Origin: Macrostomum hystrix
Lineage: Eukaryota; Animalia; Platyhelminthes
Direction of reading: 5' to 3'
DNA: 64,000 nt
Assembly (NCBI GenBank): GCA_950097015.1
Contig: CATNEN010000012.1
Coordinates: 2,666,001 to 2,730,000, forward strand
Below the pieces are notes generated by a model. It saw only the letters and a program-made list of their open reading frames with translations. It did no database searches and had not been told where the DNA came from. Below are positions 4,848 through 22,800 of the stretch, one piece after another; the first letter of the stretch is position 1, and every line of letters begins with the position of its first letter. A program made the translations under genes and the position numbers.

Positions 4848-7800
4848 TCACAGCTTCAAGCGGCTCAAGCTGCCGCTGACATTCAGCGAACTGTCGCCCA
4901 GTCGGCTGCCGTCGGCTCGGTCTGAGCCCTCCTTGTCCTCCTCCTCCGCTTCCTCCTCCTTGTCATCGGTCGATCCGCCTCCCATGGAGCTGCGGAAATG
5001 CGGGCGCGTTTTATCGAACTGTGCTCAACTTGAGCTCGGAGATTAAATAATTTCCAAAGTTTTCCAGCTTACCTGCAGCCGAACAGCTGCCGCACCCGCT
5101 TGGTCATGAACTCAACCAGCTCGTACTCGTTGCCCTGCAGGCTGGCATCGGCTTTCACCACGGCGAACGAGTCGTTGATGATGGTTAGGAAGATTCCCAA
5201 CAGGCCGAATGTCACCAGGCAGATGAAGGAGAAGAAGAACAGCGGCCCGAGCAGGGAGCTCACGGAGACCAGGTCCTTTGGAGTGCGGAGAGTGAGGCCG
5301 CATTCATTTGTGTGTGTGTGCCAAGGGGTCAGCGGAGGCGACTTTCGCCAAGTGGGTATTGAAATACCCTCGTGGTCGCTTATGAGTTAGAGGAAAGAGA
5401 AGCGTGGAGACCACTCACTTTGAACTTGAACACGCCCAGTGCCATTGAGAACAGGGCGCCCAGGGTGCCATAGAAGGAGCGATAGCTCTGCAGCTGGGTG
5501 CCGAAGATCAGGTAGGCGGCCGAGCAGAAGGCCACGAAATAGATGACGAACATGAAGACAAAGGAGCGCAAATCCTTGTAGGCCAGCTTGATGGTAGCTC
5601 CTAGCATGCCCATGCGTCTGTTGAAGCGCAGGATCTTGATGAACTTGACGGTGCTGATGAACACAACGATGCCGACCATGCAGGTGTACAACTCGTCGTA
5701 GGAAGCCAGGGAGCCAAAGTTCACGTAGTCAGAAGACTTGGCACTGTTCAACGCACCCATTGCAACAATGGCCAAGATCTTCTTGAACGCGTACATGACA
5801 ACAGCGGTGACGGTGATGCAGAGCGTCACGAATTCCAGAATGTTCCAGAAGCCAGAAAAATAGGCGCAGCGTTCGCGCCTGATTGTCAAGCCCTCGCGGA
5901 TGCTGAAGTACAACACGAACAGGGCGAAGACAATCTCCATGAACATCACAATGGCGCCGAAGCTGCCAACGTAGGAGAATAGGCGGAACACCTGAGGGAG
6001 AGTTTGAGACATTCAGAATTGGAGTTCAGAGTTTATTTGAGCTTTCAGTTATAATTTGTGACACTATAATCTAGAACAGTATACTCAAACCTACATTCTG
6101 CAAAAAATGTGTCAAGAATTAACAAAACCTCTGAAGAATTATCGACACTGATTACACGTCACTCTAGGTAAGCAGGTGTCAGAGTAGCGGCACTAATTAC
6201 CCGTCACTCCAGGTAAGCAGGTGTCAGAGTAGCGGCACTAATTACCCGTCACTCTAGGTAAGCAGGTGTCAGAGTAGCGACACTAATTACCCGTCACTCC
6301 AAGTAAGTAGGTGTCAGAGTAGCGACACTAATTACCCGTCACTACAGGTAAGCAGGTGTCAGAGTAGCGGCACTAATTACCCGTCACTCCAGGTAAGCAG
6401 GTGTCAGAGTAGCGGCACTAATTACCCGTCACTCTAGGTAAGCAGGTGTCAGAGTAGCGACACTAATTACCCGTCACTCTAGGTAAGCAGGTGTCAGAGT
6501 AGCGGCACTAATTACCCGTCACTACAGGTAAGCAGGTGTCAGAGTAGCAGCACTAATTACCCGTCACTCTAGGTAAGCAGGTGTCAGAGTAGCGGCACTA
6601 ATTACACGTCACTCTAGGTAAGCAGGTGTCAGAGTAGCGGCACTAATTACCCGTCACTCCAGGTAAGCAGGTGTCAGAGTAGTGGCACAAATTATACGCA
6701 GAAGTGGATCTCACCTTGACTTCCGAATAGGTCACAGCGCTGCCAGTCTGAAGGAACTCAGCCACCATGGTGACAGAAGCGAACAGATTGGACGGTGCAT
6801 TGTAAACCGTGAACTCGATGAACACAGCTCTGGTGCGAGTATCCAGCCAGTTCTGTTCGTAGATCTCACTAATTTTATTCTGCACTTCCTCCAGGGTGCG
6901 GGGAAAGTTTAATACATAGCCGCCACCCTTGTAAGTGCTGACCTGGGCCATGTAGGGTAGGCCTGTAATGAGGTGACGACAGGGGGGAGAAAGTGCTGGA
7001 ACTGAACTCCAATGACAGCACAGAATACTTTCAACTCACCCTTGAGCTTGATCGAAGAGCTGTACACAAACGGGGTGTTGTAGGTCTTGTTCTCCTTCTG
7101 CCAGGCCCACTTGTCCGGGTCCATCGGCTCCCACATAGGCTCGTAGGGCCCCGTATCGTCGTCCATCCAGTTGTAGGCACTTCGGCAGGACTTGTCAATG
7201 AAGGTTGAGAACACGGCAGGTGGCCGGCAGGTGTTGTCCTTGATGCGGAACTGGCGCAGGCGGGGCACGCCAACGCGGAAGATGTTGCGGCTGCCGTCAT
7301 TAATCGCCATCTTCTCGCGCCAGGTGGCCTCCGTCTGTCGTAGCGGTTGGGGATGGGTGCCTCTGTCAAGATTCTACCTGAATTCTGACTGAATTCTATC
7401 TTGATTTTGTCAGGATTCTACCTGGATTCGAACTTGATTCTACCTGGATTCGGCCTTGATTCTACCTGGATTCTGCCTTGATTCTACCAGGATTCTGCCT
7501 TGATTCTACCTGGATTCTGCCTTGATTCTACCAGGATTCTGCCTTGATTCTACCTGGATTCTGCCTTGATTCTACCTGGATTCTGCCTTGATTCTACCAG
7601 GATTCTGCCTTGATTCTACCTGGATTCTGCTTAGATTCTACCTAGATTCTACCTGGATTCTACCTGGATTCTACCTGGATTCTGCCTAGATTCTACCTGG
7701 ATTTGAACGTACGCTTAAGAGCACCAGTATAGCTTTGATTTCAATCGAACCAATGAATTTCCATCTAGATGACTAATTCGCGGTTCTTACCCCGTCTTCA

Positions 7801-10800
7801 AAGTCTCCGGCGTACATGTTGGGCACAAGTGTGCCATTCAAGTACTTGTAGAATGCCTGGTAGCTCGGAATGGCATTGTCGAAGCTTTTCGTGAAGGTGT
7901 TTCGCATCACCTCGCCAAGCTTGAAGGAGTTGATGCTGCGCGTCTGGTAGGAGATGAAGAACACGACTAGGACGAAGACTGAGTAGGCCAGCATCTCCTT
8001 GATGATGCCCTCCATTTTGATCTCCTTCAAGCGGATCTCGCGAATCTCGGCCAGTTTCTCCTGGTTGGGTAGGCAGAGATCCTCCCGAGCGGTGCGGCGC
8101 TGCAGCATGATCTGCTGGATGTCAACCTGGGTGATTTTGACCGAGTTGTCTATGGTAAAATACTCGTAGATCAAGGATAAAGCAAGACAACTAACCCAGT
8201 TGAACCATATGTACAGCCAGTGACAGTCGCAGTCATTACAGCTATTACAATTGAGTAAACTACAGTATTGGGTAATTTATTGCTCAAAGATACAAACTGT
8301 TTCGCGTCGGCTGAGATTAGAGCGCCAAATCTCATTTGGCTATAATCTGCACTCTTCTTTTTCAGCTTTCGGCACACTATCGGTGACTATCGCTTGGAGC
8401 ATGTTTATCATCCACTACTCGTTCTCTACCCCGCTACCCATCCTTATCGCTGATTGGCTAGCACATGGAGCATGTTTATATCCACTATTCCTTCTCTACC
8501 CCGTTACCCATCCTTATCGCTGATTGGCTAGTATATGGAACATATATGGAACATATCTCGAATTCTCAATTTCATCCCTACTCCGGCCACGTCTCTGATT
8601 GGCTGGCTCTCGAAACTGACCTCCTTCTTCTGCAGCAGCTCCTCGTCGTGCTTCAACATGGCGTCATCAAACGCAGCCTCTTCGTCTTCCATGTCCGGCT
8701 TCTTGATGATCATGGAGATCACGGCGGCCAACAGCAGCACCTTCAGCGGCTGCACCAGGATGACGTTTTGGAAGAAGGACAGTAGGAATGTGAGCAGCCA
8801 GTCGTTTGACTTATCCCGGCCCCACTCCATGCTGGAATGGAAAATAACGAGAAATTGAGAAGTAAACATTTTGGATGTCGACATGTCGACACCAAATAAA
8901 AGCTACTTGAAGTAGTTAGACAAAGCCGACGCACCTGTACAGAATGACAAAGAACGCCGAGCCGAACACACTGAAGAACACCAGCACCCAGGCAATGTAA
9001 ATGCACCAGTGCGGGAACAGGAACGGCTTGCTCTTCTTCATCTCCGGGTCCTCCACCTGGGTCTCCTTGCGGCCGCCTGACTGGAAGCTGAGCATGTTGC
9101 GGAGGCTCTCCCACACTCGGTTCGTCTTCTTCGAGGCCTCGGCGTCGCCATCCCAGCCGGCAGCCACGGAGCTGCCGGTGGCCTGGCCCTCCTCGGCAAT
9201 GTTGAACATCTCCATGCTGCGACCGACTGAGCGCCAGGTGTACTTGCTGGACTTGGTGCTCAAATCCTGATTGACCTGCAGCACCTTGTTGCCGGCTGCC
9301 TTGGCCTTGCACTTCTTAAAGAAGGTGATAATGATGACGGACGGCGGGAACACAATCAGGGTGGACACCACCGAGACGAACAGCTGGTCCAGGGTGAACG
9401 TTATGGGACCTTGGCGGGGATAGGACAGGAATTGTAGGATTCGTGGACCTGACACATGATTCTAACATACTGGCACATGATTCTAACATACTGGCACGTG
9501 ATTCTAACATACTGGCACATGGTTCTAGCATGCTGACACATGGTTCTAACATGCTTGATCCGTAATCGACAATTCATTCTCCCAATCAAGGATTCATAAT
9601 CCCAATCTAGGATTCATAATCCCAATCTAGGATTCATCAATCCCTAATCTAGGATTTCTATTCCCAATCTAGGATTCACTATACTAATCTAGGATTCATA
9701 ATCCCAATCTAGGTTTCACTGTACTAATCTAGGATTCAAAATCCCAATCTAGGATTCTAATTCCCTAATCTGGGACTTTTCCAACGCTAATCCCTAATCC
9801 AACCTATCGACATTCTCACCAATCGTGATGCCGGTCTTCTTCTCCATCTTGTCGGAGGACTTAAAGAACATGGCGTTGGTGATCATTGTGAGGAACAGCA
9901 GCGACAGGCAGCAGGAGATGCGCTGCACCCTAGTGAACGCACTCCTAGTCGGCCTGGAGAAGATACTGAACCACAGGTGCTCGTTACGCAACTTGCGCTG
10001 CACTGAGCTGGAGAACAGCTGCTTGAAGGCCACCAGGTCGGCGAGGCCGGAGACGGGCAGGATTCGCTCCACCTGGCCGTCGCCCTCCTCCACAGCCAGC
10101 CAATTGTTGCACAGGAAGAATGATCTTGAAATGAACAGTTTGAATGGAAGGGAGTGCAGTTAGAGTTTCCAAGAGGCCGGGAGTGGGAATCTCAGCCAGA
10201 ACAAGTGTCCGTGAGCAAGACAATTTAATTATCAATGTTCATGCTTTTAGTAAAATAGGTACTAGCATCAGCATCAGCAGAAGTAGTAATATCTATTTCT
10301 ACAGTAATTACAGCAGGGGTCGGCAAACTCCGAGCCAGCCCGCTTGCCAGATGCGGCCCTCGAAGCTACCAAGTCCGGCCCGTTGCTCCTTCCAGCACAT
10401 ATAGCATCCTGTTTCATCTCTCCTCGTTCTAGTATCCTTTTTCTTTCTCATTTAACCCTTTCTCATCTCTCCCGTATCTCATCTCTCCCGCGTCACATCT
10501 CATCCGTGTCTCATCTCTCCCCTGTCTCATCTATCGTGTCTCATCTGTCCTCTGTCTCATCTCTCCCGTGTCTCATCTCTCCCGTGTCTCATCTTTCCCC
10601 TGTCTCATCTGTCCTCTGTCTCATCTCTATCGTATCTAATCTCTCACGTGTCTCATCTGTCCTCTGTCTCATCTCTCCCGTGTCTTAAGAGCTATCCTCC
10701 CTTTTCTCATACTTCTAAAGTCAATACGGCCCACGGTCGTCTTTTAGGTTCTCTCCGTGGCCCGCACGCTAATGGGCTTGCCGAACCATGATATGCAGTA

Positions 10801-13800
10801 GTGAATAGGTGACAGGGTTACTAAACGCCTTGTTATAACGACAAAAAGGTACACATGTACTTTTATGTACCCCTACGTCCCACTCGTTGAGTTCTCAATT
10901 TAGCATTTGAATTTCTTTGTCCGCGGCCAGTAAACACTGTGCTCTGTACTTCCACAACTTACTTTTCACCCGTCTGCAAATCATTAATGACCACCTGGTC
11001 CAGGTACCAGGATTTCTCCTTGCCCTTGCCGGAATTGTCGTGCCAGATGCGCAGGAAGGTCAGCGGGCCCAGCGAGCTCTCCGTGGACATGACGAAGTTG
11101 TACACCTCGCCGCGCGGGAATCCCTGGCAAAGAGTGGCGGTTGAAATGCAGCTTAAAAGTCGATAACCTTTGACTCTGACTATATAGGATTAGTGATACA
11201 TTTGATATTGTCACGCAATCGTATCGTGCCACCTTCGACCTTGAATTCTAACAACATCACGTGACACTTATTGATACTTAAAAAGCTAGTCATCGAAATA
11301 GGACGAGTAAAATGTCTAAAAATATTAGCACTTGTCTCACCTTTCTATCACCGTCCGTCAGCTCGCGAATTCCCGTGTCGCCGTTGTCACCGCAGAGGAT
11401 AAAGTAGACCTTGGAAGTCGTGCCGGAGCCCTTCCTGTAGCCAGTCATGACCGAGATCTGGTAGTGGTAGGTGTCGCTGGGAATGTTGTCCTGCAGGTTG
11501 GTGGCGCCCCACCGCTTGATGTCCTTCTTGTCCATGATGCGGCCCCAGATCATCAGGATGATGTACAGAATCAGAGTGCTGATCACGGTAGAAAACACCG
11601 CGGCATTCTCGCTGAGGTTCTTGAACTTGCTCCAGACCGTGTTGAAGTCGATGGTGTTTGGTGGCACCACCATGTCGCTGGCGAATGACGTCAGATGTGA
11701 CACCTCCATGTGCATCAGCGACGGGCAGGAGAGCGGACCGACCTGAAGCACGCGCGATTTTAAATTTCGTTAAATTATAATGAAGCATCCCTTGTTTCGT
11801 GCTACTGGTGGCCCCTAAAAGGGCCGTTTTAAAAACAAATTACCATTTTTTTTCATTACACGCTAGTGTGCTAGGCTGATATGTACACGCTATTCTTGCG
11901 TCTGATTGGCTGGGCTTGTTTTTTGATATCGATCGTAGGCTTTTAAAGGTTTTTCTAAATATAAAAATAATAATGTGCGCGATCTCGTGCAATGATTTCT
12001 GTCAGGTTTAAATAATCACACAAGTATTGCCTTAAGCGAAACAATATAACAGTGTCTCCAAAGGTTGTTGACAGGTTTCAAAGTTAAGAGACTCACTTGG
12101 ATGCCATCGGATTTCCAAATCTTGGCTTCTTCGTCGAAGTACAACGGACTGTCAACAAAGGATGAGAACTCATACACTGTCTTCGGGTTGACTGGCTTAG
12201 CGGAAGTGTCAAACTTTACCGTAGCCTCTGGAATTTTCAATGGCAAATAGAAAAGTGAGTACTTCTGTCTGCCCATCTAAGCAGTTGAGAATATTTCTGA
12301 AATGCGTCTGGACGGAGCCATTTCACCCCATGCTTCCTGTGACTTTTCGCTCTGGCGCAACAGAAATATTTTCAATACTTATTCTGGGGGGTGGCTCTGC
12401 CGTTACAGACAAGGAAGCCTTCAAAGCTCACGATAAATTGTGACGAACACGCAGTAGAGCCCCGCCGTGTTGGTCAAATTCGCAGGAAAAATGTAGGAAT
12501 TCTTCAGCTCGTTCTGCAGTTCCAGACCGCTCTGGCCTTTCAGCATCGCCGCATCCGACTGACTCAAGTTGCCCTTGAGCTCGTCCAGGGATCTGGGCAG
12601 GTAGGTCACCCATGTGTAGTTGCCGCTTTCTGCATCCGGGCAGGAGCCGTTGTTCAGGTAGATGACAAAGTTAACCTCGGTCACCGAAGTGTCGTTCTTC
12701 AGATCCCGGACGTTGATGCCGAGGGTCTGGTTGTCCCGGGTCAGGTTGGAGCAGTGGCAGTTGCCTATCTTGTCGTCATGCTTCACCGGGTAGAGGCGAG
12801 TGTTCGAGGGCGCTGGAGAAAATTTTGGGAATTTTGTTACATGGCTAGCTCGTAGTTGTCTGGAGTTGAGTATCTATGGTACAATTTCATTGGGCTCTCT
12901 CAAGGTCATTCTCATTTAAGGTCGCGTCCCAACCTCAAGGTCGCTACGGTTCTGAATGATAACAACGTCGCAATGGTTGAATTTCCGCTTTTCAAGGTCA
13001 CAATGATTGAAATTTCCCCAAGAACTGTCCGTCTGACCTAGAATCTGCACCCAAATTCTCAAGGTCACCGTGTGTTGAAATTTCCTTTGAACGTTGTCAT
13101 AAATTTCTAGGGCTTTTTCCTTAGAAAGCTCTCTGGACTAACCGGAATTTCGCTTGATGAAGATTGAGATCGGTTTGTCCAGGTCTTTGGTGAGCACCGA
13201 GCCGCCGCCGACTTTGTTGATGTCAACCGACGTCAATGGCGAGTTCACCGCCCTGTCGCCGTGACAGATCGGATTCGTCTTGAAAGTTTGCATCTGGAAA
13301 GGGGAGTCGGTGGCAGAGCAGTCAACGCGATTGCCTCTCGCACCAAGGTCCCTAAACTCGATTTCATGTCGAGGCCACATTCATTTGAGGCGCAGCCGCG
13401 GAGAGAAGGCTTGCGGGCAAGTGTACACTGCCTGACGATGAGAATGTCAGGGTAGATCTACACACCTGTGTGAGCGTGTGCCTGCGTATAGATTCTGTGT
13501 GCGTGTGTGCTCAGGAGTCAGCGATATAGGCAGAATTGCCTCCTCGCTGGCTGTAGGTCCATTGTCACCAAGCGATGTGCCATTGCCTGTAGCCCTTCCG
13601 CAACTACGAGCTAATACGTAATAAGTTTTAAACATCAGTTGTAATAAAACAGCTTATAGTGTCCTTGACTATTTTCTAGCATTTCTGCTGCAAGTAATAA
13701 GATAAGATATTTTCGAAGCACGAAACGATTTGCCATTTTTTCCGTCAAACTTCACTAATAAAGATGCGAAATCTCACCCCGATTCCGACACCGGCGCCCA

Positions 13801-16800
13801 GTAGCTCCTTGGGAACGTTAACGCCACCGTCATCGGATGCTGCCCCGACTGCCGCTGAATAACGCATTGAAACGAGTGACAGATTCATGTTAATTAGTCA
13901 GTACACATTTGGCCTGAAAAGGAATTATATTTCGAAAAAACTTTTTCCCCCCTGCTAACCTTCATCGTTGCTTAAGTTGGACGGCGCCCGCACGCTTGCC
14001 ACAGCGACTGTCTTGGTGACCACCTCAGACTTTTCTCCTTTGTCCAGCGAGGTGCCAGCGCAGGTCTTCAGCGAGCTGAGCGACTTGGTGGCGATGTCAG
14101 CTTTCTGCCATTGGTGAAGGATTTAGAAGGGTCGGTTTTAAGTGAGAGAGAAACGATTCTTAGGAGTGACGACTCTCAGCAGTGACGACTCTCAGGAGTG
14201 ACGACTCTCAGGAGGAAAGATTCTCAGGAGGAACGATTCTCAGGAGGAAAGATTCTCAGGAGGAACGATTCTCAGGAGGAAAGATTCTCAGGAGGAAAGA
14301 TTCTCAGGAGGAACGATTCTCAGGAGGAAAGATTCTCAGGAGTGACGACTCTCAGGAGAAAAGATTCTCAGGAGTGACGACTCTCAGGAGAAAAGATTCT
14401 CAGGAGTGACGACTCTCAGGAGGAAAGATTCTCAGGAGCAAAGATTCTCAGGAGGAACGATTCTCAGGAGGAAAGATTCTCAGGAGTGACGATTCTCAGG
14501 AGCAAAGATTCTCAGGAGGAACGATTCTCAGGAGCAAAGATTCTCAGGAGCAAAGATTCTCAGGAGGAACGATTCTCAGGAGGAAAGATTCTCAGGAGTG
14601 ACGATTCTCAGGAGCAAAGATTCTCAGGAGGAAAGATTCTCAGGAGGAAAGATTCTCAGGAGCAAAGATTCTCAGGAGGAAAGATTCTCAGGAGCAAAGA
14701 TTCTCAGGAGGAAAGATTCTCAGGAGTGACGACTCTCAGGAGTGACGACTCTCAGCAGTGACGACTCTCAGCAGTGACGACTCTCAGCAGTGACGACTCT
14801 CAGCAGTGACGACTCTCAGCAGTGACGACTCTCAGCAGTGACGACTCTCAGGAGCAAAGATTCTCAGGAGGAAAGATTCTCAGGAGCAAAGATTCTCAGG
14901 AGGAAAGATTCTCAGGAGCAAAGATTCTCAGGAGTGACGACTCTCAGGAGGAAAGATTCTCAGGAGGAATGATTCTCAGGAGTGACGACTCTCAGGAGAA
15001 AAGATTCTCAGGAGCAAAGACTCTCAGGAGTGACGACTCTCAGGAGGAAAGATTCTCAGCAGGAAAGATTCTCAGGAGGAAAGATTCTCAGGAGTGACGA
15101 CTCTCAGGAGAAAAGATTCTCAGGAGCAAAGACTCTCAGGAGTGACGACTCTCAGGAGAAAAGATTCTCAGGAGCAAAGACTCTCAGGAGTGACGACTCT
15201 CAGGAGAAAAGATTCTCAGGAGCAAAGACTCTCAGGAGTGACGACTCTCAGGAGAAAAGATTCTCAGGAGCAAAGATTCTCAGGAGTGACGACTCTCAGG
15301 AGAAAAGATTCTCAGGAGCAAAGACTCTCAGGAGTGACGACTCTCAGCAGGAAAGATTCTCAGGAGGAAAGACTCTCAGGAGTGACGACTCTCAGGAGAA
15401 AAGATTCTCAGGAGCAAAGATTCTCAGGAGTGACGACTCTCAGGAGAAAAGATTCTCAGGAGCAAAGACTCTCAGGAGTGACGACTCTCAGCAGGAAAGA
15501 TTCTCAGCAGGAAAGATTCTCAGGAGGAAAGATTCTCAGGAGGAAAGATTCTCAGGAGGAAAGATTCTCAGCAGGAAAGATTCTCAGCAGGAAATATTCT
15601 CAGCAGGAAAGATTCTCAGGAGGAAAGATTCTCAGGAGGAAAGATTCTCAGGAGGAAAGATTCTCAGGAGGAAAGATTCTCAGGAGGAAAGATTCTCAGG
15701 AGGGACGATTGTCAGGAGTGGCTATTTTAAGGGGTCAATTCCATTGTGTTTGGCAATTGTGAGGATAAAAATCGGATCTCTATAATCGACTTCATCTTAC
15801 CTGAGCCTTCCTCTGCTCCTGCTGTGCCAGCAGCGCTTGAAACTTCTCACTGCACAACTCGTTTCTCATGTCGGGCATCATGTACTTTAGCATTTTCTGC
15901 AGCTGAGTGCAGTTCTTGATGCAGCTGAACCTAGAAGTGGATTTTTCATTGAGTTACTGATTAGAATTACTTATTGGCTGGGGTAGAAATTGGTGCAGAT
16001 GTGGCGGCCTCCCCAGTCCATGGACTGAACAGCTGTACACAGCCTTTAACAGCGTCGCACGATAGTTCAAAAGTACAACGTCTATAACCGCAACACCGAA
16101 TTCATTGTTTTATGGTCCCAACCTCCAATGCACTGTCCAATGGTCACATCCTCTGAAGCACTGTCTATGGTAAAAAACCCGTAATGCAGTCAATGTTCAC
16201 AACTTACACATTGTCTGGCAGGGTGTCTCCATCTGGCAGCGGACACTTTGAGCTCTTCGGAGCTCCGGCCTGCTCATTGTGCTGGGTTGGATTCAGCGGC
16301 GCTTCGCGAACAGCCCTGCGTCGCCTAGCAACAGACATGGCTGGGGCAGCGCTAGGATCACACCAGTCCAAGCTGAGATCGGCCGGCCAGCCCATCACAG
16401 TCTCCATGGTTGTTACGCACGCTTGAATGTCCTCCTGGGCTGGAGTCATTGTGGGCTGGATGTTGCCCACAGTCGAAGCCGTTCCTGAGGATTTAAAAAA
16501 ACAGATCGATATATATTTTCTTAATTTCCCGAGCTTTTCGATTCCGAAATTTTCTACTCCGAGATTCCAAAATATCCCATTCTGAAATCGCCCATTCTCA
16601 AATCTCCCATTACCAAATCTCCCATTACCAAATCTCCCATTCTCAAATCTCCCATTCCCAAATTTCCCATTCCCAAATCTCCCATTTTCAAATCTCCCAT
16701 TACCAAATCTCCCATTACCAAATCTCCCATTCTCAAATCTCCCATTCCCAAATCTCCCATTCCCAAATCTCCCATTCCCAAATCTCCCATTCCCAAATCT

Positions 16801-19800
16801 CCCATTCTCAAATCTCTCATTCCCAAATCTCCCATTCCCAAATCTCCCATTCCCAAATCTCCCATTCCCAAATCTCCCATTCCCAAATCTCCCATTCTCA
16901 AATCTCCCATTACCAAATCTCCCATTCTCAAATCTCCCATTCTCAAATCTCCCATTACCAAATCTCCCATTCCCAAATTTCCCATTCCCAAATCTCCCAT
17001 TCCCAAATCTCCCATTCCCAAATCTCCCATTCCCAAATCTCCCATTCTCAAATCTCCCATTCCCAAATCTCCCATTCTCAAATCTCCCATTCTCAAATCT
17101 CCCATTACCAAATCTCCCATTCTCAAATCTCCCATTCCCAAATCTCCCATTCCCAAATCTCCCATTCCCAAATCTCCCATTCTCAAATCTCTCATTCCTT
17201 ATTCTAAGATTCCTAACGGTTCAAAATCTCCCATTCCCAAATCTCCCATTCTCAAATCTCCCATTCCCAAATCTCCCATTCCCAAATCTCCCATTCCCAA
17301 ATCTCCCATTCTCAAATCTCTCATTCCTTATTCTAAGATTCCTAACGGTTCAAAATCTCCCATTCCCAAATCTCCCATTCTCAAATCTCCCATTCCCAAA
17401 TCTCCCATTCCCAAATCTCCCATTCCCAAATCTCCCATTCCCAAATCTCCCATTCTCAAATCTCCTATTCCCAAATCTCCCATTCTCAAATCTCTCATTC
17501 TCAAATCTCCCATTCTCAAATCTCCCATTCCCAAATCTCCCATTCCCAAATCTCCCATTCCCAAATCTCCCATTCTCAAATCTCTCATTCCTTATTCTAA
17601 GATTCCTAACGGTTCAAAATCTCCCATTCCCAAATCTCCCATTCCCAAATCTCCCATTCTCAAATCTCTCATTCCTTATTCTAAGATTCCTAACGGTTCA
17701 AAATCTCCCATTCCCAAATCTCCCATTCCCAAATCTCCCATTCTCAAATCTCTCATTCCTTATTCTAAGACTCCTAACGGTTCAAAATCTCCAACTCATT
17801 TCCCATGAGCAGATTCCAAGTTGTAAGTTTCGCAATGAAAACCCCCAGTACGCCAATTGCCTACCTCCAGTGGCGCTATTGACCTGAGCAGGCGTGGCCG
17901 ACTGAAACGAAGCCATGCTTTTGGCCGTATTGCTCAAAGCTGAGGCTGAACTCAACTGAGTATGGCAATGGGAAGCGGGATATTAGCCACGCTCATAGAC
18001 TGACAAAAAATGGTTTCTTTTTCAGCTTGAACGTGAAATGAAAACTAACCTGAGCGTTGACATTGCTGCCGTCTGAGGTTAGACTGGCCAGGGTGCTGCT
18101 AAGTGAGATGGCCTGAGTGGGATCAGTTAAGAACTGGGACACCTGGTTGACCACGTCGCAGGCGCTGTCCTTCACCTTCATGACCATCTCCGTGTCGTTT
18201 GAGTCTTTCTGCAGTTCATTAGGCATTGTGTTATGCGGAAGTTTGGTTGAAGTGGATTGGGTCGAGACACAATACGTCATGAGAATCAAGATGAGTCAAG
18301 ATGGGTCAAGATGAGTCGAGATGAGTCGAGATGAGTCAAGATGAGTCCAGATGGGTCAAGATGAGTCAAAATGAGTCAAGACGAGTCCAGATGAGTCAAG
18401 ATGAGTCAAGATAGGTCAAGATGGGTCAAGATGAGTCATTATGGGTCAAGATGGGTCAAGATGGGTCATGATGAATCAAGATGGGTCAAGATGGGTGGTC
18501 AAGATGGGTCAAGATGGGTGGTCAAGATGGGTCAAGATGGGTGGTCAAGATGGACCAAGATGGGTCAAAATGAGTCAAGGTAGATCAGTTGGAACGGATG
18601 ATATAGACCACTGTAGGTTCTAGTTGCATGAGATGGTCCTAGAAATGCATAGAATTAGCCGTTCGAAGCAAAAGTTTCGCAAATAGCAAACTGGCGATGG
18701 AGCGCAGTGCTGCGGTCCGCTTACAAAAGTGCTGCTGACCATGGAGATGACTGAGAGCGCTTTGGTCGGATTTCTGGGATCCAGGTTGGTGAGGATGTTT
18801 TTGGCGTCAGAGATGCTGTTGATGTTGAGCACCTGGACACGGACCTGATCGGAGGCCTGGCGCGCCTTCTTGTCGAAGGCGCAGACGCACACTTTCATCA
18901 AGTCGTTGTTGTTGAGCGCCTCCGGCTCGGCCTGCACCTGCTTCTCTGAGTCCTTGTACGTGAGAAGGTTCGGGTTCGGGAAGCAGCTGCCCTGGCCTTT
19001 CTTGTCGTACAGCCTAAAATCTGGCGCGTTCGGGCTCGGCGTGGTGCCATTCTGGTACAGACTGATCGGCGTCCACTGATCCTCGTTGCTGAAGTCCTGC
19101 TTGCAGCAGTCCAGGCTTGAGTAGATGGCTGTGCTGCTGTCGCCAACGCAGCCCATCACAATGCGCACGGTGTTGTTGCCAACGAAGTCGTCTGGATCCC
19201 GGCACTGGGAGAAATCCAGAGACAGGACGTCACCCAGGCTGACCGCCACGTCCGCGTCGCCCTTGAACTTGCAGACGAGACTCGACGGGATGACCCTGAT
19301 GGAGCTGAGCTGCCTGTTCTGCAGGTTGATTGGGAAGCTGGTTGGACTGCTGAACACGGACAGGCGGTAGAGGCCGTAGCTCAGGGTGTGCTTGTCCAAA
19401 ACGAAGCTGGCAGTCTGGGGCGCCTTGCACTGATAGTCCAGCGGCTTCAGATTCAGCGGATCGTCCAGCGAATTGCTGGGGTCCACCACCTTCAGCACCT
19501 GCCAGTTGAAGTAGTAGGTGTCAGGATTGCAGGTGCTGCTATAGCTGGCCGTGATGGTCAGTACCGCGCTCTTCTCCACCTGGATGACGGTTTCAGGAGA
19601 GACAACTGCGCCGTCGCGTCGGAATTCCACCTCCTGGGTGCAGGACGCGGTGTTCAGCGAGTTGAAGATGCTGCCGCACATGCCCAGCTGCTCGCCACCC
19701 TCCTTGCTAAAGACATTGAACAGCCGCAGGCCGACTGTGTTCTTGCCGGGCTGGAAGTTGTAGCCTAGCAAAGCGAACATGTACAGCCGGCCATTGCGTG

Positions 19801-22800
19801 ACACTGTCATCGTTCCCACCGGGTCAAACGCGCCTGAGGCCGTTGGCTGAGCGCCGTTCGTCGTGAGGCTGTAGACAATGGAGCTTGATGGACTCAGCGG
19901 CACTGACGTATTGTCCCAGGCCAGCTTTGAACGCCACAGGTAAATAGTGGCATTAGCCGCATAGTCAAACGGGTTGAAGTTCTCGATGGTCTGGGTCAAC
20001 ATAGCGCCGGATGGCATAATCTGGTTCAGCTGGAAGGTGATCGGAAAGCCTCGCTCGACAGTAACGGCGAAGATCACGGACCTGCTGGGCCCGCCGACGG
20101 GCTGAATTAGCTGCACTGTCGGCTCGAAAATATCCGAGCCTACTTTGGTCTCGTTGGTAACAGTCAAGCTACCGATGAGATTCTTCATGACGGCGGTGAC
20201 TGTGAACTGGCCGAAGCTGCTCACCTTGTACTTGAGCACAAATGGACCGTAATTAGTAAAGTCGCCATCAAGCGGGTAGGTCTTAGTGGCCATTCCATTG
20301 AGCTGCAGCTCCACTGTGTTGGACTCCCCGCCGATAGCCAGGCCGAATTTCGTGTTAATAAACAGGTGCAGCTCCAGATCGCTGGACAGGGACAGAAGCG
20401 GCTTGGCTACAATGTAAGCGTCCTTGAATGGCACCTGCGTTCCAAGCGTGACCAGCGCCTCTCGGGAGCAGCCTTCGTTGGCGGCGCGCAGCGATACGTT
20501 GAACACGCCGGTGGCGCCATAGACGAAGTCACGATCGACCTGCAGCTCGCCGTTCAGGCCGTCGACAACCAGAAACTCGCAGCTGTGAAGGCCGTCGCAC
20601 AGTTGCAGCTCGTACCGGCCGATGCCGTCGACGCGAAACTTCACCGGGAAAGTGTCGTCCTTGAGGCCGCTGAGTTTGTTTGCCACAATCTTGACAACTG
20701 GACAGGTGTTGATTTTAACGTGCAACGGGAGCACCACCATGTTGGTGTCGTAGGTGACGAACAGCTGAAGGTCCGCCGGGCCCAGCAAGGTCAGATTGGC
20801 GCAGGTGATGGTCAACGCGCTGGAGTCAGCGGTGTGCGGAACTACAGATCCGCCCGGCTGGCTAACAACCTTCAGCTTGTCCTTGACTGAGTCCACCATG
20901 GGAAATTCGATCTTGACCAGATCGGTGGGCGTGGTGCCGATGCACATCGCCATGCGGTTGCTGCGATCGCCAACCAGAACCACGGCGCTGTGGCATTTCA
21001 CCGTTCGACTATTGGTCACGCACAATGTGACGTTGTGAAATCCGAACGCGCTGGCCGGAATCGTGTCAGTCTTTACTGTTGAGTACGCGTCAACCTGAAA
21101 GGTGGCCTTCAGCACGTCGTTGACGAAGATGGTAGCGGTCTTGGACAGTCGCCCAGCGATGATGGCGGTGTAGGCGATGCTCTGGTCCGAGCCGCTCTGA
21201 GCTGGGAAAATCTTGGCGACGTCGATGTCAACAGCCTCCTCGGTGTCTTTGTCTGGAGGGGATGGATTTGATGGATTGATCATGAGAGTGCACAACTAGT
21301 TCTCATTGTCAAAGTATTGCCTGCCTTACTCTTGAGCGTGAGAACCATCTGGGTGGAGTTGTCGCCGTAGACGCTGGAAACTCTGATTTTAACCGTCTTC
21401 TGACCGGCTTTGTCGAATGTGTGCGAGAAGACGTTCTGTTTGAGCACGGCGGAGTTGCCGTCGCCGAAGTCGACGCTGACAGTGTAGTCGGCCGGGTTCA
21501 TCTCGACCGGCGGGCTGCCGACGCTGTACCTGTAGTTGCTCAGCACGAACGTGATGGCGTCACCCGTGTACATCACCGGAGCGTACGGGTTGGACACATT
21601 GATAGTGAAGTAGGTGTAAACATTGGGCGGCAGGTAGAGCTGGGAGGTGAGGAACAGGTGATAGGCCAGGCTGGGCGCGGTGGTACAGTTCCCGGTGGCG
21701 ATGCCGCTCAGGTAGGCTAGGCGCCCGATGCAGATGCATTGGCCATAGTTGGGACTGTTCTTCTGGATGCCATAGATCTGCTTCATGTCCACCACGCTTG
21801 ATGGATTTGGCCTGCGATTTGGGACAAAAATTCGTTGCTGACACATCTGGTTGACTTTTTAGTCCGAGTTGCGAGTAACGCTCCTAAAATTCAATAGAAG
21901 TGAAAACAACGAGGCAGAGATGCCGAGGTGTCACCTGAAGTAACCGCAGTTCTCAAAGCAGTCGGACTGGTAGTGCTCCTGGGTGCTGGTGAGCAGATTT
22001 GAGCTCACCAGATACGAGGGCTTCACAGCGGTGCCGTCAGTGCAGCCAAAGTCCGAGTAGGTACGCGGCATTTCTGAGAAAGGTTTTTGCCATTGTATTG
22101 CTTTAGAAGGGGGCGTCAACTAGTCTTCACTAGTAGACGAAAGAAAATCCTAAGGCTAAATTTCGACTCAGGCGCAAAACTCCTACCCTTGATAGTGTCG
22201 GAGTCCCACACGGCCTCCTGCACGCAGATGTTTGAGATGCCGGAATTCTCCGGTGCAATGCCTGTTCTGCCGCGGCAGAAGGCCATAGTCTCTTGGAACG
22301 GAATAATGGCGTTCAAGAAGTAGCGGTCGATGTACTTCGCCACTCCGTTCTGCTTGATGATGGCGCGCATGCCGTCAACGTAGAGCATCAGGCCTGACCG
22401 ATCCTCCCAGGTACCGCACAGCTGCGGGGTGAGGATGAGGATTCTGTAACTTCCTGCATCCTACGTACTCTCGTCCCACGTACTCGTATTGTACCAGTTT
22501 CTGTGCTTCTTGGTCACGTTTTCGCCCAGTTCTAGTCCCATTTAAAGTCCCAGTTCTAGTCCCATTTAAAGTCCCAGTTCTTATTCCCAGTTCTAGTCCC
22601 ATTCAAAGTCCCAGTTCTAGTCCCAGTTCTTAGTCCCAGTTCTAGCTCCAGATCTAGTCTCGTTTCTAGTTAATAATTATCTCACCGTGACTGGAAGTGA
22701 ACTTTTGGAGATCTCAAACGTGGCCTCCCAGCGCACACTGGAGCCAGTAAAGTCTGTGCCGTAGACGCCGAACACGAACTTCCATTGGCCGAGAAATTCG

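Follow-up and report, generated by a model that had tools for sequence, protein, structure and literature searches.

In the flatworm Macrostomum hystrix, a 64,000-nucleotide stretch of DNA (contig CATNEN010000012.1, positions 2,666,001 to 2,730,000; hereafter the window, whose coordinates are used throughout) carries a minus-strand gene for a polycystin-1-like protein whose GPS motif lacks all four canonical cysteines and keeps the HL/T triad of the cleavage site. A sequence-only reading of this DNA had described such a motif, with the cysteines replaced by Pro, Ile, Met and Val and with one non-canonical cysteine in LSCPS. Both points were confirmed by the sequence, the reading frame and a column-wise alignment to relatives (Table 1). 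The motif is split by an intron, across which it reads ...PLYFDEEAKIWKSDGIQ|VGPLSCPSLMHMEVSHLTSFASDM. Exon B, which bears the N-terminal half, ends in ...DSPLYFDEEAKIWKSDGIQ (corresponding to ...SSFVDSPLYFDEEAKIWKSDGIQ) followed by a GTGAGT donor, and exon C begins with VGPLSCPSLMHMEVSHLTSFASDMVVPPNTIDF (corresponding to VGPLSCPSLMHMEVSHLTSFASDMVVPPNTIDFNTVWSKFKNLSEN) after the intron end ...CTTCAG. The pattern of a GPS with two disulfides, C-x-aromatic-W...W-x3-G-C...C-x-C-x-H-L-T, is not found, since the four cysteine columns (C1 to C4) hold P, I, M and V. The triad is present as HLT 29 residues before the first transmembrane helix (TM1), which fits the spacing of about 20-30 residues that defines a GPS, at a place where 91 of 108 aligned polycystin-1-like relatives have HL[ST]. 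The aromatic residue two positions after the first cysteine column (C1+2), the Trp-x3-Gly element and the glycine before C2 are all present as P-L-Y-F and W-K-S-D-G-I. Its alignment, column for column, with the GPS of the 108 relatives and its position next to TM1 and PLAT go beyond what chance similarity would give.

The gene is long and extends from about position 22,000 down to about 5,000 of the window, which is eukaryotic. Pfam matches on the exon translations follow each other in minus-strand order as PKD repeat(s), REJ, PLAT, Polycystin domain and PKD cation channel. The complete order of PKD, REJ, GPS, TM1, PLAT, transmembrane helices, Polycystin domain and PKD channel is that of the polycystin-1-like (PKD1L/REJ) receptor-channels with 11 transmembrane helices (11TM). 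In addition, an alignment with human polycystin-1 (PDB 6a70_B) begins directly behind the cleavage site, passes through TM1 and reaches into PLAT (E 5e-5). Because of the Pfam domain matches and this match over stalk, TM1 and PLAT, the gene is assigned to the polycystin-1-like receptor-channels, as a PKD1L2/REJ type in a Macrostomum-type flatworm. It has the channel domain and lacks the leucine-rich repeats, WSC and C-lectin N-terminus of polycystin-1. The best match to exon C is a Macrostomum lignano protein (PAA59473.1, 2842 aa; P0001), an orthologue with the same precomputed domain set.

Spliced contigs from three public runs of one study (X2, X3 and X5; 6.2, 1.6 and 6.3 kb) match the exons with 0-2 mismatches. 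Their joint over the GPS intron lies at 11740>12095, which within a two-letter ambiguity equals 11742/12097, and further joints were found at 12227>12432, 12812>13143, 11122>11340 and 10124>10963. Both sides of the intron that splits the GPS are in phase 0, the neighbouring junctions (exon A, the 13293-13143 exon and exon D) have consistent phases and canonical sites, and each exon that was checked has an open frame. Since the contigs join the exons exactly, the gene is expressed and correctly spliced. Splicing that restores the cysteines had been named as a way in which the sequence-only reading could fail; instead, the contigs of all three runs carry the exact cysteine-less junction. No alternative form restoring a cysteine and no other joint in the GPS intron was seen in these contigs, which as assemblies drop rare variants, so that a minor isoform could escape.

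The same state is found in M. lignano, where the GPS reads ...NPVYFDEEKQKWKTDGISVGQLSCPSQMHLEVTHLTSFASDM, with P, I, L and V in the cysteine columns and HLT kept. Amino-acid identity between the two proteins, taken per exon, amounts to 96% and 95% in PLAT and TM1 and to 71-81% in the GAIN exons. The ratio of nonsynonymous to synonymous substitutions (dN/dS) against the M. lignano locus (L001, NIVC01002259.1) was 0.027 for exon C (dS 0.83), 0.032 for exon D (dS 0.51), 0.087 for exon A (dS 1.19) and 0.18 for the 13293 exon (dS 0.83); for exon B, with dS saturated, it was not computable (dN 0.154), and the overall dS of 0.5-1.2 is near saturation. These low values show purifying selection over a long divergence; together with the state common to both species and with transcription and correct splicing, they indicate that the gene is not decaying. 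Accordingly, the proposal that the cysteines were lost while HL/T was kept, and not through decay, is supported. Between the two loci the ectodomain evolves about 4-6 times faster in dN than TM1-PLAT, at similar dS.

An exhaustive HMMER search with exon C returned 1738 relatives. The best 150 of these 1738 were inspected, and the 80 residues before the triad were aligned for 108 of them. Cysteine occupies columns C1, C2, C3 and C4 in 94, 72, 95 and 69% of these sequences. All four cysteines together with HL[ST] are found in 61 of the 108 and the C-C- pattern with HL[ST] in 23, followed by CCC- with HL[ST] in 3 and the partial patterns --CC, --C- and CC-- with HL[ST] in another 3. The triad is absent from 13 sequences with four cysteines and from one with --C-, and 3 sequences of a Lingula clade have neither cysteines nor triad (FFG). 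Loss of all four cysteines with HL[ST] kept occurs once, in the Macrostomum cluster, and is thus restricted among the 108 to the Macrostomum orthologue pair. Carriers of C-C- forms include scallop, crayfish, shrimp, sea spider, rotifer and acorn worm. A tree of 81 rows, from which the GPS columns were left out, requires at least 10 changes of the C2/C4 pair and at least 5 of the C1/C3 pair. The flatworm protein had no well-supported sister on this tree and grouped weakly with the scallop protein P0024 (C-C-; Shimodaira-Hasegawa-like approximate likelihood ratio test, SH-aLRT, 85) and with P0050 (CCCC).

A second, word-based search with the GAIN-PLAT part of the orthologue gave mollusc and annelid proteins with four cysteines and HLT as the closest full-length relatives; no other flatworm was among the 14 proteins that it returned. 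The PKD1L2-like orthologues of spiralians (Haliotis rubra P0155, Mercenaria P0156, Mactra P0157, Patella P0158 and Owenia P0159) are 36-39% identical over GAIN-PLAT, with a near-identical stalk, TM1 and PLAT start (THLTSFGSDFVVAPNTIDFTNVWAKF...NENAAVFSTV...), and share with the flatworm protein the domain set and an upstream N-Y-H-x-[LIV]-N-[LV]-T motif. What sets them apart from it is the complete C...GC...CxC pattern, together with a Pfam GPS match above threshold (Haliotis 38.6 bits; the Pecten control reaches 27.6 bits). Because the mollusc and annelid orthologues keep four cysteines, the ancestor of the orthologue group very probably had both disulfides, and on this comparison both were lost in the Macrostomum lineage specifically. 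The coordinated loss proposed earlier is upheld, as specific to the lineage and maintained by selection. Cysteine-less motifs common in the clade would weaken that proposal; in the family at large, partial loss is recurrent, as the 23 C-C- sequences illustrate, and full loss with HL/T is confined among the 108 relatives to this pair. Since the polycystin family has dropped GPS cysteines many times, a cysteine-less GPS with the triad is rare, not isolated. The case stands at the far end of a known trend of recurrent cysteine loss and introduces no new principle.

Comparison with known proteins places the motif further. Human polycystin-1 has the same arrangement as the window protein, with the HL/T triad and a GPS followed by a stalk of about 25-29 residues, TM1 and PLAT, and stalk, TM1 and PLAT align directly. 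From the C1 column on, we take the human protein to read CQYF, compared with PLYF in the window, with Tyr-Phe common to both. The C2-C4 disulfide is already lost in human polycystin-1 and the C1-C3 bridge (C3015-C3043) is kept, whereas the window protein has none of the four cysteines. The premise of the sequence-only reading that the polycystin-1 GPS contains two disulfides therefore needs correction, as the human protein has one (PMC4810088) and the number of GPS cysteines is given in review as 2-4 (PMC9672506). The one-disulfide C-C- proteins of PKD1L2-like type (Pecten maximus XP_033737386.1, which is P0024, and proteins of crustaceans, sea spider, rotifer and hemichordate) lack C2 and C4 and keep HL[ST]; unlike the flatworm protein they retain the C1-C3 pair. 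Apart from the flatworm pair, a complete lack of the four cysteines was seen among the 108 only in the Lingula anatina clade (P0109, P0113 and P0123; XP_013384713.2). Unlike in the flatworm, the triad (FFG for HLT) and the aromatic residue at C1+2 are lost as well, and for this reason the clade looks like a true loss of cleavage function. In Pinctada imbricata (P0161) the four cysteines are kept and a long Pro/Thr-rich insertion stands in place of HLT. Read from their sequences, Pinctada and Lingula are independent routes to a presumably non-cleavable GPS.

The fold was modelled with AlphaFold2 on the M. lignano orthologue (P0001:1474-1828, alignment of 83 relatives), which stands in for the window protein. 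The model has a mean predicted local distance difference test score (pLDDT) of 88.7 and a predicted template modelling score (pTM) of 0.85, the GPS strands reach a pLDDT of 91-96, and after HLT the last strand is in place (residues 334-340, SFASDMV). In an exhaustive structural search with VIA-align, GAIN domains came first (CD97 Z 14.7, Gpr126 13.5, BAI3 12.5, CELSR1 12.0, latrophilin-3 (LPHN3) 10.6 and GPR56 10.5), spanning model residues 14-342, and the related ZU5 fold ranked after them. Foldseek matches to the PDB were weak (TM 0.31-0.34, E ~1e-3), with the GAIN domains of BAI2 and BAI3 as the only matches of probability 1.0. A GAIN domain has a helical subdomain A and a twisted beta-sandwich subdomain B whose final five strands form the GPS, and by these matches the orthologue segment is confidently predicted to adopt this fold. 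The adhesion G protein-coupled receptors (GPCRs) that supply these best structural matches have the HL/T chemistry, the aromatic-His interaction and the Gly element in common with the window protein. They differ in the two highly conserved disulfides anchored beside CxCxHL/T, which stabilise the strained cleavage turn (PMC13197933), and in the seven transmembrane helices that follow, in place of the 11TM body of the flatworm protein.

Some further observations concern the model. Compared with small adhesion GPCR GAINs, the GAIN region of the orthologue group has about 150 residues more, and CD97 aligns to 167 of its roughly 330 residues. Taken alone, model residues 148-300 (exon A; P0001:1621-1773) resemble GOLD/jelly-roll beta-sandwiches (Z ~7-8); this stretch, in which a motif N-[YC]-H-x-[LIV]-N-[LV]-T is conserved, might be an inserted domain. 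The sequence GNCHCSNLT (C-x-C-x-N-L-T) was considered as a vestigial second GPS and rejected, as it aligns with the N-Y-H-x-[LIV]-N-[LV]-T family motif of the mollusc and annelid orthologues. Besides, proteins of the axonemal 96-nm doublet-microtubule repeat match the model about as well as true GAINs (9fqr_Hn Z 13.4, 8glv_AE 12.8 and 9y6s_9f 10.6; bovine sperm, Chlamydomonas and Leishmania), which suggests a GAIN-like fold inside cilia.

Taken together, we lean slightly towards the view that hydrophobic pairs replace the bridges, that the GAIN fold persists and that the predicted cleavage at HL/T continues. In the Macrostomum lineage, the C1-C3 bridge gave way to Pro with Met or Leu and the C2-C4 bridge to Ile with Val. 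The elements that position the cleavage site, namely the HL/T triad, the Tyr at C1+2, Trp-x3-Gly and the last beta-strand (stalk), were kept. The fold is probably held by hydrophobic packing, perhaps aided by new lineage-specific cysteines; we infer its stability without disulfides. Self-cleavage would probably still take place between Leu and Thr and leave TSFASDM... (TSFASDMVVPPN...) as a tethered stalk. It is plausible because HL/T, the Tyr at C1+2 and the Gly are kept. In latrophilin-1 the aromatic residue at this position (F803) must stack on the His, and cleavage remained complete with Tyr in its place; in adhesion GPCRs the Gly of the Gly-Cys element is likewise of importance, and the GPS bridges tie the four terminal strands together and may help in refolding (PMC13062082). 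The broader statement, a natural GAIN domain that folds and self-cleaves in spite of having lost both canonical disulfides, with hydrophobic pairs or rewired cysteines instead, is tentative and somewhat short of an even chance. The earlier description of the domain as possibly mechanically labile was only inferred, and atomic force microscopy indicates that thermodynamic and mechanical stability of GAIN domains need not correlate (bioRxiv 10.1101/2023.04.05.535724).

Several points weigh against continued folding and cleavage. The two disulfides are among three elements holding the strained turn (PMC4810088), and mutation of GPS cysteines abolishes the maturation of GPR56 and LAT-1 (PMC3776922). 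Moreover, H-x-S/T is not sufficient, since BAI2 with HLS is largely uncleaved (PMC13062082). HLT is conserved between just two orthologues, and relatives without the triad likewise conserve the entire stalk region. With the Pfam GPS profile (PF01825) the orthologue segment reaches 17.3 bits, below the cut-off of 22.5, at the right place (profile 4-43 of 45). The model describes the orthologue and not the joined protein of the window itself; because its alignment is dominated by cysteine-containing homologues, its confidence leans on these and says nothing on stability without disulfides.

The disulfides may have been rewired rather than lost, which we consider a serious possibility that nevertheless falls below even odds. 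In P0001, the beta-rich part of the 330 residues before the triad contains six cysteines (positions 1578, 1636, 1638, 1675, 1738 and 1794), each in a column that holds cysteine in at most 4% of 83 relatives. The window protein retains six of six (NPICHGD, GNCHCSNLT with two, NNGSCPD, GLYCVFV and LSCPS). Accordingly, the domain need not be disulfide-free as originally written, since six lineage-specific cysteines of the same domain are kept in both orthologues and may pair anew. They could form three new bridges, one of which would tether the GPS hairpin through the LSCPS cysteine, placed on that hairpin between columns C2 and C3. This is suggested by the even number of new conserved cysteines in an extracellular protein, where unpaired cysteines are unusual, and all six persist at a dS of about 1. 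However, at about 80% identity the conservation of six of six is not significant alone (~0.26 by chance), and the LSCPS column at the hairpin tip usually holds T, N or S, so that this cysteine may be exposed, unpaired or related to glycosylation. Rewired disulfides would be compatible with cleavage as well as with its absence.

It is less probable, and in our view unlikely, that the GAIN fold is kept and the site no longer cleaves, with HLT persisting by structural constraint of the turn and strand or by phylogenetic inertia. Like PKD1L1 or PKDREJ, family members described as lacking cleavage (PMC9672506), the protein would then act as a polycystin-1-like receptor in one piece. The 13 relatives with four cysteines and no triad also fit this explanation, as do the essentially uncleaved BAI2 (PMC13062082), the role of the disulfides as stabilisers of the strained turn (PMC4810088, PMC13197933) and the block of GPR56 and LAT-1 maturation by cysteine mutations (PMC3776922). 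In contrast, Macrostomum retains the triad together with the aromatic residue at C1+2 and the Gly, while 4 of the 10 residues before HLT differ between the orthologues. The cysteine-less Lingula group lost both triad and aromatic residue, and its FFG state shows that the triad can drift when unconstrained. Finally, it is very improbable that the motif reflects decay or an artefact, such as a pseudogene, a wrongly predicted junction, a hidden micro-exon or a splice form restoring the cysteines: mis-joining is conceivable in a motif split by an intron, and Pfam GPS gave no match on the separate exon pieces of the window, but in contigs of three runs the junction is exact, has canonical GT..AG ends and is the sole joint in that intron, the frames are open with dN/dS far below 1, and the annotated M. 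lignano protein is in the same cysteine-less state.

Table 1. Features of the polycystin-1-like gene and its GPS motif in window coordinates.
Feature	Position	Strand	Basis
PKD repeat match	21283-21858	minus	Pfam PKD_4, 29.3 bits
REJ match	18623-21295	minus	Pfam REJ, 26.5 bits
Large upstream exon(s), ectodomain with PKD repeat and REJ	18623..21858	minus	Pfam REJ, PKD_4
Upstream GAIN-region exon (…NPICHGD…ISIFIKRNS), one lineage-specific Cys	13143..13293	minus	contig joints, reading frame, orthologue comparison
Exon A, beta-rich GAIN part directly upstream of GPS	12432..12812	minus	contig joints, frame
Exon A, four of six lineage-specific Cys (GNCHCSNLT, NNGSCPD, GLYCVFV)	12432..12812	minus	orthologue comparison
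Exon B, GPS N-terminal half (ATVKFDTSAKPVNPKTVYEFSSFVDSPLYFDEEAKIWKSDGIQ)	12097..12227	minus	sequence, frame, AG/GT sites, contig joints, column alignment
C1 column, Pro	12147-12145	minus	alignment to relatives
Tyr at C1+2, aromatic partner of the His base	12141-12139	minus	alignment
Conserved Trp	12117-12115	minus	alignment
Gly before C2 column	12105-12103	minus	alignment
C2 column, Ile	12102-12100	minus	alignment
Phase-0 GT..AG intron splitting the GPS motif, 354 nt	11743..12096	minus	skipped in spliced contigs X2, X3, X5
Exon C, GPS end, stalk, TM1, start of PLAT (first third)	11341..11742	minus	frame, Pfam PLAT, 6a70_B alignment, contig joints
GPS C-terminal half, start of exon C (VGPLSCPSLMHMEVSHLT)	11689..11742	minus	alignment columns
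Non-canonical Cys (LSCPS)	11727-11725	minus	exon C
C3 column, Met	11709-11707	minus	alignment
C4 column, Val	11703-11701	minus	alignment
HLT triad	11697-11689	minus	alignment
Putative scissile bond	between 11692 and 11691	minus	HL/T position
Stalk, 29 residues (TSFASDMVVPPNTIDFNTVWSKFKNLSEN)	11691-11605	minus	within exon C
TM1	~11604-11542	minus	within exon C
PLAT start	from ~11469	minus	within exon C; PLAT-matching open segments 11293-11769 and 10962-11189
Exon D, rest of PLAT	10963..11123	minus	Pfam PLAT E 3.6e-6, contig joints, frame
Polycystin domain	6646-7035	minus	Pfam E 1e-24 (exons within 5383..7035)
PKD cation-channel domain	5383-6012	minus	Pfam E 4.2e-42 (exons within 5383..7035)

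The introns of the gene show features of their own. In the transcriptome-like runs, the summed contig depth is huge over two short intronic stretches (10424-10607 and 13368-13551), where it rises to about 150,000 and about 10,000, respectively, compared with about 20 on exons. Many short contigs make up this depth, and many contigs fold back or are oddly joined; both stretches resemble abundant repeats, dispersed or in tandem. A contig of run X1 with a loose end at 13568 leads into TAACCC-type telomere-like repeats. The big intron upstream of the GAIN exons (14180-17620) is packed with long minisatellite arrays, which translate as ...RFSGGKILRSDDSQEE... units on the plus strand and NGRFG/ENGRF units on the minus strand, and has a strong GC skew (-0.56 at 16-18 kb).

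Single cysteine mutations in GPR56 cause disease. A conserved and expressed receptor that lacks both disulfides and keeps the other known cleavage determinants amounts to an evolutionary test of whether the disulfides are necessary, and its GAIN domain may serve as a template for cysteine-free GAIN constructs. If the domain does fold and cleave without the canonical disulfides, it would be a natural control for their role in autoproteolysis, refolding and force-dependent release of the stalk, relevant to polycystins as well as to adhesion GPCRs. In planarians, PKD1L-2 homologues mark ciliated mechanosensory neurons (PMC11448475, PMC12626421), and by analogy a tie between the cysteine-less GPS of the flatworm and mechanical gating is conceivable.

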